Assembly (NCBI GenBank): GCA_965112735.1
Contig: OZ218951.1
Location: forward strand, 3,968,001-4,032,000
From: Phaeosaccion multiseriatum
Lineage: Eukaryota > Protista > Ochrophyta, other classes
Length of the DNA: 64,000 nucleotides
Direction of reading: 5' to 3'
Shown here one piece after another: positions 49,425-55,126 of this stretch (position 1 is the first letter of the stretch; every line of letters begins with the position of its first letter). The notes below the pieces were generated by a model. The model did no database searches and had not been told where the DNA came from. It saw only the letters and a list, made by a program, of their open reading frames with translations. The translations under genes and the position numbers were made by a program.

Positions 49425-52359
49425 TTACACAGCTCCGTGTGTGAGCATGACCTCTGCCACTCTCCTGAAGCCCGCGATATCAGCTCCTGCCTGCAGGTCT
49501 CCCCTTGTGTTGTACTCCTTCGCCGTCTGTTTCACCTCGTCTGTGCCGAGTAGCAAGACAGACAAGAGACAATATATACACGAAGAGAGAGAGGGGGGTG
49601 GGTGGGTAATGGAGAGAGGCATGGAGAAAGGGGCATAGAGTCAATAGAGAGTAAACGCCAAGAGAGGAAAGCGGTACAGGACAAAAACGCTCCGGGGCGG
49701 GGTATGACAGGCGGCAAGAAAGCGACGAGCGGAAGGAAGTCATTCTCCAGTGTCGAGGTGAGCTGTCGAGTGACTGTCTAGCAGTAGCAGCCCCTTGACT
49801 GTCAAGGTGAGCTGTCGAGTGACTGTCTAGCAGTAGCAGCCCCTTGACTGTCGAGTCACTGCCCCTTTAAGCCAAACCCTTCCCTCATCCACCCCTCCCC
49901 CCCCTACCCTCGCTCTGACCCATCTCCATATCTATCCCCCCCCCCCCCTCCTCCTCCTCCATCTCCTCCCCGTGACTCACCAAAGATGGCCTGCATCCTG
50001 TCCTTAATGCGTGCCTCCAACATGTCTGCTGTCATGGTCAAGTCTACGCTTGTCTCTGGTCCGCTCACCAACCCTGCTGCAGCCCCTGTGGCCTTGTGCG
50101 GGGCAAACATGATTCCTCTCTTCCTGAACACTGCCTTGGCCTCCTTCGAGCAAGGCTGACAAGAGGAAGAGAGGGAGAGGGAGAGAAGAGAGAGAAAGGA
50201 AGGGAGGGGGGGGGGGAGGTGAAGAGAGAGGGGGAGGAGGGGTGGAGGAGAGGAGAAAAGAAAAGGGAGAATGACGTCACGATACGACGGGTCATGTACG
50301 TGTGCGTCCCCACTGACATATGTTACTCTCCCCCCCCCCCCACCCCTCTCTCTTTGACACCATCTCACTGACTGACCTGGTTGCCCCCCTCGATGACCCC
50401 CATGCATCCGTTGTCAGCAAGGCTTGTTGCTGTGGCGGCGTCGATCTCGTCGCGTTGTGCGCAAGCGAACACCTTTACGAAGGTTTGGCGAGGGGCGAGT
50501 GAGTGGGTGGGTGAGTGAGTGAGAGGGACAAGAGGGAGGGATGGTGGGAGGGAGGGAGGGAGAGAGAGAGAGAGAGATGTACATCACAGCAACAGCAGCT
50601 TTGACTTTGACTCACGAGATCGCAGGGGATGTTGAAGATATTCTCGGGATCGTTGTACTGCGCCGTTGTGGAGGCGATGATGTAACGGCCCAGCCTCGCT
50701 CCTCGCTGCGCAGAGGGAGAGGGGCGGGGGGGGGGCAGAGCACTGCTGAGTGGCAGGCAGGCGGCAGAGGGCAGAGGGCTGTGGCCACCAGAGGCGCGAC
50801 ACACGCAGGCAGGCAGCCGGGCGCCGATAATAGGGGCCCACAGGAACAGCGATACCCAAGCAGAGGGACAAGCACGTGTATGACCTCCTCCTCCTCCTCC
50901 TCCCCCTCCTCCTCCTCCTCCTCCTCCTCCTCCCCCTCCTCCTCCTCCTCCTCCTCCCCCCCTCCTCGTCCTCCTCCTCCTCCTCCTCCCCCTCCTCCTC
51001 CTCCTCCTCCTCCTCCTCCTCCTCCCCCTCCTCGTCCTCCTCGTCCTCCTCCTCCTCCCCCTCCTCCTCCTCCTTCTCCTCCTCCTCCCCCTCCTCCTCC
51101 TCCTCCTCCTCCTCCTCCCCCTCCTCCTCCTCCTCCTCCTCCTCCTCCTCCTCCTCCTCCTCCTCCTCCTCCTCCTCCTCCTCCTCCTCCCCCTCCCCCT
51201 CCTCCTCCTCCCCCTCCTCCTCCTCCCCCTCCTCCTCCTCCCCCTCCTCCTTCTCCTCCTCCTCCCCCCTCCTTCTCCTCCTCCCCCTCCTCCTCCTTCT
51301 CCTCCTCCTCCCCCTCCCCCTCCGTCCTCCTCCTCCTCCTCCTCCTCCTCCTCTCACCTCTGCCTTGATCTTGAGGATGGTCTTCATCTTGGATTGATCA
51401 ATACCCGCCGACTCATAAATGTGGCCACTCTGATCCGTAAAAGTCAACGGAATGGCGCCATACTCCAACAGCTTCTCTGCCACCGCCAAGGCCACCTTGC
51501 CGCTGCCCGTCACGAGACACCGCTTGCCCTTGAGCCCCTCGTTCTTATCTCTCAACATGGCGTCGGCGAAGTGCACCACGCCCGACCCAATGGCCTGCGG
51601 ATAGAGATGCGTTCCTCCCCACAACACGCCCTTGCCCCTCTGCGCAATGTGTTCATTGATCCGCTTGTACTGCCCGTACAGGTAGCCAATCTCGCTGGGG
51701 CCGCATCCGAAGCCGAAGGCAGGCGAGTCCAAATCGGGCCCAATGTATTTGGAAAGCTCCGTCATGAACGACTGACAGAAGCGCTGAATTTCGGCCTCGG
51801 ACTTGTCGTGCGGGTTAAAGTCGGCCCCTCCGACGGCGGCCCCCAGACTGCAGCCCGAGAGCGCGTTGCTGAAGACGGTGTCGAGTCCCTGCGCCTTCAT
51901 GAGGCTCATGTTGACGTTGCCGGAGAAGTGCAAGCTCCCCTCGTAAGGCCCTAGGGCACTCGAGTACTGCACTCGGAAACCCCTGTTTCGCGTATTTTGT
52001 GTGTGTTTTGTGTAGTTTGTGTTGTGTTGTTGTGTTTGATGCGTGGGGGGGGGGGGGGGGTTGAGTTGTAAGACGGTTACATTTGGGACCACACGACATG
52101 ATGGTTAGTCACGTGATGACATGACGGTTACAATGCATAAGGAGTTCGGGACTGCCGGGTACAGAGTACAAGGAGTTAGGGGATCACACTTCACCCCTGC
52201 CACTACCCGGCAAGGAGTGAGTGTCTTCCTGAGTCTTCCTCACTCTCTTCCTACCTGTTCATGCGGCTGTTGCCGTGGTCGTCGAGCCAGGCCACGCGGA
52301 ATTGAATGGCACGCTCGGGCTCGATGAGCTTTGGTTTGGGTTTAGGTTTGTTCGTTTGG

Positions 52360-52404
<45 letters not shown>

Positions 52405-54180
52405 TGTGTGCGCACCACCCAACCAGCGCCGTATGGTGTGCGATGAGATGGCAAGGGGGGGAGGGGGAATGGGTGGATACTTCAGGTACTTGAGGTGTTT
52501 GTCTTGGGGACAGGCAACAAGAGGCGAGAGATGTACGTATTCGGCTCGTCAAAGAAGAGCATAGGAGCAAGGCCGAGGGTAGACAGATGAACAGACAGAC
52601 AGACAAGCTGTTAAGACAGACAGACAGGTAGGTAGACAGCCAGCCAGTAGACAGACAGACTGACAGATAGACAGACAGGTAAGACACACAGACAGGTAGA
52701 CAGACAGACAAATAGACAGACAGACAGATAGACAGACAGGCAGATAGACAGACAGGCAGATAGACAGACTGAAAGATAGACAGACAGACAGACAGACAGA
52801 CAGTCAGACAGGCCAGTAGACAGACTGACAGCAGAAAGACAAGCAGGCAGGTAGACAGACTGACAGCCAGACGGACAGACAGACAGACAGGGAGGAATGC
52901 AGATGTACAGGCCGGCTTACAGGCAGAGAGACTGGCACAGGCTGGCTGCTGCCCACCTTACTTCCCCCCTGTGTATCTGTACGCCCTGAAGGCAGACCGA
53001 CCATCCCTCCCCCTCCCCCTCCCATCCACCTCTCTCCCTCCACTCCCTCCCTCCCTCCTCTCCCTCCCTACCTGCTTGGCAATCCAGGCGGTCTTGGGTT
53101 GCCGGTCGAATACCGGTGCGAGAGAGGGGATGGTGTCCGCTATAGACTCCAAGAAGACGGACTTGTGAGGGTCCTTGCGGCGGGCCTCAGCCACGAGCAT
53201 GTCCGCTGCCTCTGCGCCGGTCTTGAACTGCTGGTCACCCTGTTCATTCATTCAGTCAGTCAGTCGGTCAGTCAGTCAGTCAGTCGGTCAGTCAGTCGGT
53301 CAGTCAGTCAGTCAGTCAGGCAGGCAGGCAGGCAGTCAGTCAGGCAGTCAGCAAGCCAGGCAGGCAGGCAGTCAGCCTTCCTTTCGCTGCGCCGTCGTTC
53401 TCCCACCGTTAGGAACGCAAAGAACAGAACTGGAAGGAGAGATAGAAATGTGTCCCGTGGCCAAAGGACGATTTCAGGAGCAAATCATCGGTCCAAGGAA
53501 TGGGGGGGGGGGGGGTAGAGCGCTACAACACACTCAAAAAGGCTGAAGCATCAATAACTGGAGAGGCAAAGGGCAGCGATGCCAGTAAGGGCGGGCCACG
53601 CCAATAGGTCTGACATACAGGGCGAGTGTCCATCAACTGCCACGATACAGGGCAAGCCGTCGGGGAAAGCAAAACAGCTGCTGCTCCACTACGCCTCAAA
53701 CACGGACTAGCAGGAAGCAGAGCAAAGCTCCAGCAAACGAGTACACCAGGCGCTTCCTCCACTGACCTGTCGTCTAAAAAGAGGCTTATTTCTCCATGTT
53801 TTCTGGCGCGGGGGGAGAGGACGGAGAAGCGAGAGCAGAGGTAGCAGAAGGAGCGAGATGGCAGGCGTAAGAAGAAAAGCGGCAGATGGAGAAAGGAGCA
53901 ACAGCAAAAGCACCACAAACTTCTTAACATAGGCACTGCCACTTACCCCACTGAGTTTGGTGTTACCGTGCACCCCGCCGAACTGGTAGAGGGGAGACAG
54001 GTTGTCCACTGACACCTTGAGAGAGGAGGGTGTCGCATGAAAGCTCCTTCCTTCACCTCGGCCGGTCACCGCTGCTGCCCGGACCAGCCCTTGTCCACCA
54101 CCACTCTGCACCCCTCTCCGCGCTACTGCTGCTAGCGCTCCACGGGCTGCCGCCTTTGTGGGCGTGCAGAGGACTGTCAT
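49425..54180 (-). CDS. NADP-glutamate dehydrogenase-like protein (GdhA fold) with degenerate active site, multi-exon
   Basis: IEPERAIQFRVAWLDD, NR|GFRVQYSSALGPY, DFNPHDKSEAEIQRFCQSFMTEL, EIGYLYGQYKRI, GKRCLVTGSGKVA, VIEGGNQP, GADIAGFRRVAEVMLTHGAV*. R/A-rich presequence. Includes a 36-nt exon at 53802-53767. Confidence 0.9.
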
Positions 54181-54680: not shown

Positions 54681-54950
54681 GCTATCAGCTATTGATGTGC
54701 GCCAATAGCGCAGCTATCAGCTATTGATGTGTGCCAATAGCGCAGCTATCAGCTATTGATGTGTGCCAATAGCGCAGCTATCAGCTATTGATGTGCGCCA
54801 ATAGCGCAGCTATCAGCTATTGATGTGTGCCAATAGCGCAGCTATCAGCTATTGATGTGTGACAATAGCGCAGCTATCAGCTGTTGATGTGTGCCAATAG
54901 CGCAGCTATCAGCTATTGATGTGTGCCAATAGCGCAGCTATCAGCTGTTG
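54681..54950. repeat. 32-bp tandem repeat (GCTATCAGCTATTGATGTGTGCCAATAGCGCA)n, about 8.5 copies
   Basis: Directly visible; each unit contains the stem GCTATTG/CAATAGC; no unique spacers. Confidence 0.95.
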
Positions 54951-55011: not shown

Positions 55012-55126
55012 TCGACCCCTGACACGCTATCGCCCACTTTCTCGATAGCGCGCTATCGGCCGCCGGCTGATAGCGGATAGCGCGCCGGCTGGCGCCGGCG
55101 ATAGCGGATAGCGTGTCAGGGGTCGA
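55012..55126. mobile_element. 115-bp MITE-like element with perfect 20-bp terminal inverted repeats
   Basis: TCGACCCCTGACACGCTATC (55012-55031) and GATAGCGTGTCAGGGGTCGA (55107-55126); related copies at 37975 and 54269. Confidence 0.75.

Follow-up and report, generated by a model that had tools for sequence, protein, structure and literature searches.

A conserved ochrophyte homologue of glutamate dehydrogenase, probably non-catalytic, encoded in the genome of Phaeosaccion multiseriatum

Can a protein built like glutamate dehydrogenase (GDH) still act as a dehydrogenase when its catalytic residues have been exchanged, and, if it cannot, what is it kept for? The question is raised by a minus-strand gene in a 64,000-nucleotide stretch of the Phaeosaccion multiseriatum genome (assembly GCA_965112735.1, contig OZ218951.1, positions 3,968,001 to 4,032,000), hereafter called the window, the coordinates of which are used throughout. 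The gene runs from an ATG at 54180-54178 to a TAA stop at 49427-49425. Its nine exons, spliced by script across introns that are all GT-AG, give an open frame of 1614 nt (537 aa). A first-pass annotation had read it as a maintained GDH homologue without its catalytic set, possibly assembling with an active GDH or sensing NAD(P)H. The evidence presented here points to a paralogue of the class-I (hexameric, gdhA-type) GDHs that is likely non-catalytic and works by binding.

The protein belongs to the Glu/Leu/Phe/Val dehydrogenase superfamily: the large exon 5 matches both Pfam domains above their gathering scores, PF02812 at 3.4e-28 (98.4 bits, cut-off 25.3) and PF00208 at 8.5e-17 (62.1 bits, cut-off 23.4). 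The same exon matches 56 distinct solved GDH sequences, the best of them P. falciparum GDH2 (3r3j, 4.8e-61), with Babesia microti GDH (9yis) also at the top. Motifs were placed by HMMER alignment to these two structures and to C. glutamicum GDH (5ijz), and the key residues are given in C. symbiosum GDH numbering. In this family, K89 and K113 are the lysines binding the substrate carboxylates, K125 is the catalytic lysine and D165 the catalytic aspartate. Opposite the canonical motifs of the solved enzymes, the window protein has GPYEGSLHF for GPYKGGLRF, DTVFSN for EQIFKN, GAAVGG for GGGKGG, DSPAFGFG for DVPAGDIG and YPQAIGSG for R.EATGYG, while the dinucleotide-binding GSGNVA is nearly unchanged (GSGKVA). 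All of the replacements quoted in the first-pass annotation, as well as the retained GSGKVA, could be located in exon 5 at the expected aligned positions.

Conservation of the single residues was scored in an alignment of 256 canonical GDHs and 108 proteins of the ochrophyte clade described below. At the four key columns, 100% of the canonical GDHs have K/K/K/D. In the window protein, the substrate lysines are replaced by Glu185 and Ser209, and a lysine occurs at the K89 and K113 columns in 0% and 1% of the clade, respectively. The catalytic lysine, present in 256/256 canonical GDHs and in 0% of the clade, is Val221 within GAAVGG; the catalytic aspartate, 100% D in canonical GDHs, is Gly261, like in 99% of the clade. 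The dinucleotide fingerprint, on the contrary, is retained. The window protein carries GSGKVA and TDQSG, and the corresponding columns are conserved in the clade, both in the fingerprint itself (G330 100%, G332 73%, A335 96%) and on the adenosine side (D354 100%, G357 99%). On the nicotinamide and substrate side, the Thr of EATGYG, the Asn of GSGN, the Asn of ANMP and the K..N.GGV..S loop are kept in only 0-19% of the clade. Judged from these replacements, GDH activity is very probably absent.

These losses are not a peculiarity of one genome. Exon 5, used as the query of a word-indexed search across 5.8 billion proteins, gave 7366 matches at E <= 1e-20, and the best 120 of these were examined. 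They are 50-75% identical to the query, and every named one is from an ochrophyte: Discosporangium, Undaria, Ectocarpus, Sphacelaria, Chrysoparadoxa, Tribonema, Phaeothamnion, Heterosigma, Triparma, Ochromonas, Octactis, Chrysophaeum and many diatoms. K89, K125 and D165 are missing in 120/120, and K113 is retained in a single protein (P0120). The replaced motifs are hence not due to chance, since they are common to the best 120 matches while the 256 canonical GDHs are K/K/K/D. Among 1.84 billion cluster representatives searched, the canonical KKKD proteins rank directly behind this dead group.

In a maximum-likelihood tree, the dead ochrophyte proteins form one clade with a Shimodaira-Hasegawa-like approximate likelihood ratio test (SH-aLRT) support of 100, within which the window protein falls together with brown algae, Tribonema and Chrysoparadoxa (SH-aLRT 99), so that the source organism is placed among the relatives of brown algae. 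The clade was recovered again, with SH-aLRT 99, in a second tree computed without the columns of the N-terminal add-on presented below. It is an old clade of ochrophytes, comprising brown algae, xanthophytes, raphidophytes, bolidophytes, diatoms, chrysophytes, dictyochophytes and pelagophyte-like taxa. In addition, Ectocarpus, Sphacelaria and Phaeothamnion have a second dead paralogue, which is more divergent (P0091, P0113 and P0043). Pseudoenzymes are known already, and so is an inactive GDH subunit in Thermus. A literature search found no description of the clade, of its add-on or distribution, nor of any algal or other eukaryotic dead class-I GDH; the eukaryotic clade thus appears to be undescribed.

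A gene without its catalytic residues could be an ordinary pseudogene, or a reading-frame artefact in a GC-rich repetitive region. Microsatellites do occupy several of the introns, and the evidence for transcription is from orthologues only. The gene nevertheless has nine exons, an open frame and GT-AG introns. Compared with the coding sequence of Discosporangium, spliced from its genomic locus, 511 codons could be aligned with 68% identity over the full length. By the Nei-Gojobori method, the proportion of nonsynonymous differences (pN) is 0.22 and that of synonymous differences (pS) 0.74, giving a dN/dS of ~0.09, a rough ratio, as dS is saturated. The gene is under strong purifying selection, pN being far below pS; the dN/dS near 1 that would go with a simple pseudogene was not found. 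The column entropy of the clade is about that of canonical GDHs sampled across all domains of life: the clade therefore evolves faster than the canonical enzymes, yet is clearly constrained.

Orthologues are transcribed. Members of the clade bear MMETSP transcriptome names, and the brown-alga-like P0003 is encoded without a break on a pair of contigs (1.8 and 2.9 kb, from two runs), while the genomic genes contain 8 and 14 introns. A search of sequencing runs found exon 5 complete in four runs of unspecified type, with a 10% share in one metatranscriptome. The open frame with its GT-AG introns, the full-length identity with a pN far below pS, the transcription of orthologues and the presence, in the window protein, of 41 of the 43 residues specific to the clade (see below) make a pseudogene or an artefact extremely improbable.

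The next question is whether the active site was rebuilt for another reaction or abandoned. In canonical GDHs, 103 alignment columns are at least 95% invariant. The clade keeps 52 of them (in at least 80% of its members), mostly the fold-defining Gly, Pro and hydrophobic residues, but, also, G330 and A335 of GxGxxA and the S-D-x-x-G following Rossmann strand 2. Lost columns (kept in less than 20%) number 27, among these K89, R93, Q110, K113, K125, A163, G164 and D165, together with the nicotinamide- and substrate-side positions named above. The mean entropy of the lost columns in the clade is 2.20 bits, compared to 1.45 across the core columns as a whole and 0.21 where the residue is kept. The lost columns being the most variable part of the protein, the former pocket appears to be disused and not retuned to a new substrate.

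A neofunctionalised enzyme, with a remodelled cleft, another substrate and a different NAD(P)-linked reaction, would be in line with some of the conserved features. GxGxxA and the adenosine-side S-D-x-x-G are preserved in most members, K89 is replaced by Glu in 72% of them, which would suit a cationic substrate, and many invariant polar residues are specific to the clade (R136, K145, R168, Q237, K249, E361, R386). Catalysis across the Glu/Leu/Phe/Val dehydrogenases, however, requires the equivalents of K125 and D165, and these are absent in 100% of the clade. Furthermore, the pocket columns show above-average variability, the opposite of what is expected from a retuned site, the nicotinamide-side contacts are lost, and the fingerprint is broken in a chrysophyte-like subclade (GSNYVA/GSHYVA). 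A new enzymatic function is hence rather unlikely. Part of this evidence also bears on the sensing of NAD(P)H suggested in the first-pass annotation: the conserved adenosine-side residues are compatible with it, but the nicotinamide side is lost, and one subclade is without the second glycine of GxGxxA.

New constraints have appeared elsewhere in the protein. At 43 columns, the clade is at least 85% invariant for residues that are rare or absent in canonical GDHs. These columns cluster in three places: an N-terminal add-on, residues 376-392 and residues 505-512. The add-on reads GVHG-x(4-7)-K-x-WRNKPLFRR-x-GD-xx-FKTG-x-EA, with the named positions conserved in 88-100% of the 108 clade members. 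It is absent from the 256 canonical GDHs, and the window protein has it once a 36-nt exon is included in the gene model. An AlphaFold2 model of the orthologue P0001 (68% identical to the window protein), built from an alignment of 79 sequences, has a mean predicted local distance difference test score (pLDDT) of 90.3. Residues 1-48, corresponding to the presequence, are disordered in the model, while the add-on is confidently ordered from residue 49; it is probably ordered in the protein as well. Foldseek matches the model to solved NADP-GDHs (5ijz) with an E of 1e-41 and template modelling scores (TM-scores) of 0.81 by query and 0.92 by target: as modelled on this orthologue, the two-domain fold of GDH is kept.

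Targeting was read from the N-terminal composition only. The first 40 residues of the window protein contain five basic and no acidic ones, and lack a hydrophobic core of the signal-peptide kind. The pattern is shared by all 58 members of the clade whose N-termini are complete: a basic leader of ~45-80 aa with few acidic residues and without a signal-peptide-like core, the maximal nine-residue Kyte-Doolittle mean having a median of 1.1 and never reaching 2.5. This composition suggests import into mitochondria and, on the same ground, a location in the plastid was rejected. The canonical GDH of Triparma strigata (P0408) and its 84% identical relative P0320 look different. They start with a signal-peptide-like segment, with Kyte-Doolittle maxima of 2.3-3.0, followed by a Phe. 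A hydrophobic segment followed by Phe is the pattern of plastid-directed proteins in these algae.

These N-termini matter for the idea that the dead protein is a regulatory subunit, tuning an active GDH within a heterohexamer. A precedent exists in Thermus thermophilus, where the catalytically inactive GdhA assembles with GdhB (PMC9570180; PDB 3aoe). The scaffold residues of domain I, which build the hexamer in GDHs, are kept in the clade. Moreover, canonical GDHs with mitochondrial-like presequences exist in eukaryotic transcript contigs, one of them (P0415) with a partial add-on. A suitable partner is, however, difficult to find: among the best 120 matches listed, no named brown alga or diatom is represented by a canonical class-I GDH, and Triparma is the only named ochrophyte with such an enzyme among the matches listed. 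Its signal-peptide-like start predicts another compartment than the mitochondrial-like N-termini of the dead clade. The clade is, in addition, only ~40% identical to canonical GDHs, its many specific surface invariants suggest a partner of its own, and brown algae carry two dead paralogues instead. Overall, regulation of an active GDH in a mixed hexamer seems unlikely.

The first-pass annotation was thus right about a large part of this protein. The maintained homologue without a catalytic set is confirmed by the conserved clade, the dN/dS of ~0.09 and the transcribed orthologues; the best 120 matches carry equal key losses, apart from K113 in P0120; the Rossmann fingerprint is kept; and the presequence indeed looks mitochondrial, as far as composition can tell. 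The proposed assembly with an active GDH does not find support in the N-termini or in the matches listed for brown algae and diatoms, and the clade-specific add-on, of all new features the most conserved, had been overlooked.

A non-catalytic, binding function of the ochrophyte protein could be pictured as follows. The GDH fold and scaffold are retained, whereas the three lysines, the aspartate and most contacts on the nicotinamide side are gone. The protein would be imported into the mitochondria and would be unable to deaminate glutamate. It may act there by binding, either in homo-oligomers that serve as scaffold or sensor or together with the second dead paralogue in a hetero-oligomer. An interaction surface is probably formed by the add-on and by residues 376-392 and 505-512, and adenine nucleotides may still bind to the adenosine half of the dinucleotide site, which is conserved. 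An independent role as scaffold or sensor, including a mixed oligomer of both dead paralogues and perhaps the binding of adenine nucleotides, is rated highest among the possible functions, with slightly better than an even chance. A wider proposal is put forward tentatively: the clade may be an undescribed mitochondrial family of ochrophytes built on a dead GDH hexamer scaffold with a new N-terminal add-on, serving as an adenine-nucleotide or metabolite sensor or as a structural subunit of a mitochondrial assembly. On this proposal, brown algae and diatoms would lack canonical class-I GDHs altogether, and their 'NADP-GDH' transcripts, used in omics studies as markers of ammonium assimilation, would not report GDH activity.

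Several points weigh against this picture. The saturation of dS leaves the dN/dS of ~0.09 rough, the support for transcription comes from orthologues, and mitochondrial targeting is deduced from N-terminal composition. GSGKVA and S-D-x-x-G are retained and K89 is changed to Glu in 72% of the clade, leaving room for some ligand chemistry.

If the clade members cannot catalyse, the consequences reach beyond one gene. Brown algae and diatoms are major primary producers, and the picture of their nitrogen metabolism is drawn mostly from gene lists and transcript levels. Public records give clade members the names of active enzymes, 'Glutamate dehydrogenase 1 (NADP-dependent)' in Ectocarpus and Tribonema and 'glutamate dehydrogenase (NADP+)' in JGI records. 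Metabolic models as well as expression-based claims on GDH-mediated ammonium assimilation in these groups would then need re-checking. For Phaeodactylum, Phatr2_13951 has been reported as an induced NADP-GDH (PMC4588885); it could not be linked to a sequence here. The clade would also be a clean case of pseudoenzyme evolution, in which constraint on the old active site was relaxed and an add-on and surface positions became newly invariant. The purpose for which such a dead scaffold was reused is directly testable in the tractable Phaeodactylum and Ectocarpus.

The gene structure is summarized in Table 1. An eight-exon model (525 aa) was dropped: WRNKPLFRR, near-universal in the N-termini of orthologues, is missing from it. 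The motif is encoded by a 36-nt phase-0 exon (53802-53767) inside the supposed intron 1, and Discosporangium has a 36-nt exon at the equal position with equal flanking intron phases. This exon was included because it is needed to match all orthologues. The first-pass gene model had the start at 54180, the stop, the large exon and the open frame right, although it missed the 36-nt exon, and the large exon truly covers 51982-51358.

Table 1. Exons, replaced key residues and intron 5 repeat of the GDH-like gene, in window coordinates.
Feature	Position	Strand	Description
Exon 1	53947..54180	-	ATG, basic Ala/Arg-rich presequence, then start of the add-on (SPLYQFGGVHG)
Exon 2	53767..53802	-	36-nt micro-exon, KTWRNKPLFRRQ, core of the clade-specific add-on; AG/GT flanks, phase 0
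Exon 3	53072..53239	-	GDQQFKTGAEA...: end of the add-on and first GDH helices
Exon 4	52255..52328	-	LIEPERAIQFRVAWLDDHGNSRMN(R): conserved GDH domain I strands; canonical invariants E, P, R, F, V, W, D, G retained
Exon 5	51358..51982	-	All replaced motifs and the retained GSGKVA (51507-51490)
E185 (exon 5)	51942-51940	-	Stands for K89
S209 (exon 5)	51870-51868	-	Stands for K113
V221 (exon 5)	51834-51832	-	Stands for catalytic K125
G261 (exon 5)	51714-51712	-	Stands for D165
Intron 5 microsatellite	50884..51353	-	(GGA)n/(CCT)n; TRF period 3, 157 copies; in frame with exon 5
Exon 6	50616..50705	-	RGARLGRYIIASTTAQYNDPENIFNIPCDL; clade-specific invariants A382, G385, R386, S391, T392
Exon 7	50377..50472	-	VFACAQRDE...IEGGNQ, counterpart of FPCATQNE...AEGANMP
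Exon 8	49981..50155	-	PCSKEAK...HKATGAAAGLVSGPE..., counterpart of the GKAANAGGVAVSGLEM loop
Exon 9	49425..49540	-	C-terminal helices and TAA stop (49427-49425)

The introns are filled with long microsatellites: (CCT)157 at 50884-51353, (ACAG)75 at 52591-52890, (TCAG)33 at 53244-53375 and (TG)25 at 52361-52410. The (GGA)n stretch after exon 5 keeps the frame open, resulting in an open reading frame of 502 aa (50584-52092) that a gene caller could misread as a Glu/Gly/Arg-rich insert. Coding of this stretch was rejected, as the insert is absent from all orthologues. Some 500 bp before the ATG, on its upstream side, a 32-bp unit is repeated 8.4 times with 96% identity (54681-54950), and a weaker 32-bp array lies at 55044-55113.

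Dead or half-dead relatives also occur outside the named ochrophytes. Two groups of environmental eukaryote-like proteins (P0198/P0199 and P0157, P0164, P0186, P0292-P0296) have such residue sets and a related add-on, VHG...RPLFRR.G...F..G.EA, but with other replacement residues (HKHD, QKVG, AQRG, LQFD) and 36-41% identity. Genes are densely packed on the compact contigs of these proteins and encode domains of eukaryotic type. The proteins share the ochrophyte-clade side of a branch with SH-aLRT 98, even without the add-on columns, a grouping that could still reflect long-branch attraction of fast-evolving dead lineages. P0415, from a Logan transcript-like contig of 1668 nt, has the full KKKD set, a leader of mitochondrial appearance and part of the add-on (SLFRRGGREVSFVNGEQA), which may therefore have arisen before catalysis was lost. 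Four proteins (P0162, P0175, P0188, P0260) form a tight, otherwise canonical clade in which only the catalytic lysine is replaced (GGAAGG, KKAD/KKAT). On the environmental contig L005 (3377-4621), the dead relative P0293 is followed, ~1 kb downstream, by a gene that combines Fer4_20 and Pyr_redox_2 domains, as does the small subunit of glutamate synthase.

Partial loss of the catalytic set is also found in land plants. A 637-aa 'NADP-specific glutamate dehydrogenase' (P0138 cluster, 209 members), which we take to be of the At1g51720 type, has R, K, A and E at the four key columns. Like the ochrophyte protein, it is a partly dead eukaryotic class-I homologue annotated as NADP-GDH; it keeps K113 and lacks the catalytic Lys and Asp. 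This lineage, however, arises from among canonical GDHs, separately from the ochrophyte clade, and has another long N-terminal region, without WRNKPLFRR. By sequence and position in the tree, the two lineages are independent of each other. Judged by title and abstract, none of the papers found to mention At1g51720 concerns the enzyme.

The nearest functional parallel is GdhA of the Thermus thermophilus GdhA4-GdhB2 heterohexamer, a member of the GDH family that is inactive and yet maintained (PMC9570180). It is a bacterial protein of another GDH subfamily, with 23-24% identity to the clade model (3aoe, 3aog). Moreover, its active partner is known and encoded alongside, and no add-on has been described, while the algal protein has its add-on and no evident partner. 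In sequence, the closest known systems are the class-I hexameric NADP-GDHs of C. glutamicum (5ijz/5gud), P. falciparum (3r3j), Babesia microti (9yis) and E. coli (4fcc), with the same pair of Pfam domains and 40-50% identity. Compared to these enzymes, the ochrophyte clade keeps half of the universally invariant columns, replaces K89, R93, K113, K125, A163, G164, D165, the Asn of ANMP and the S380 region, and adds a presequence and a conserved N-terminal add-on of ~35 aa.

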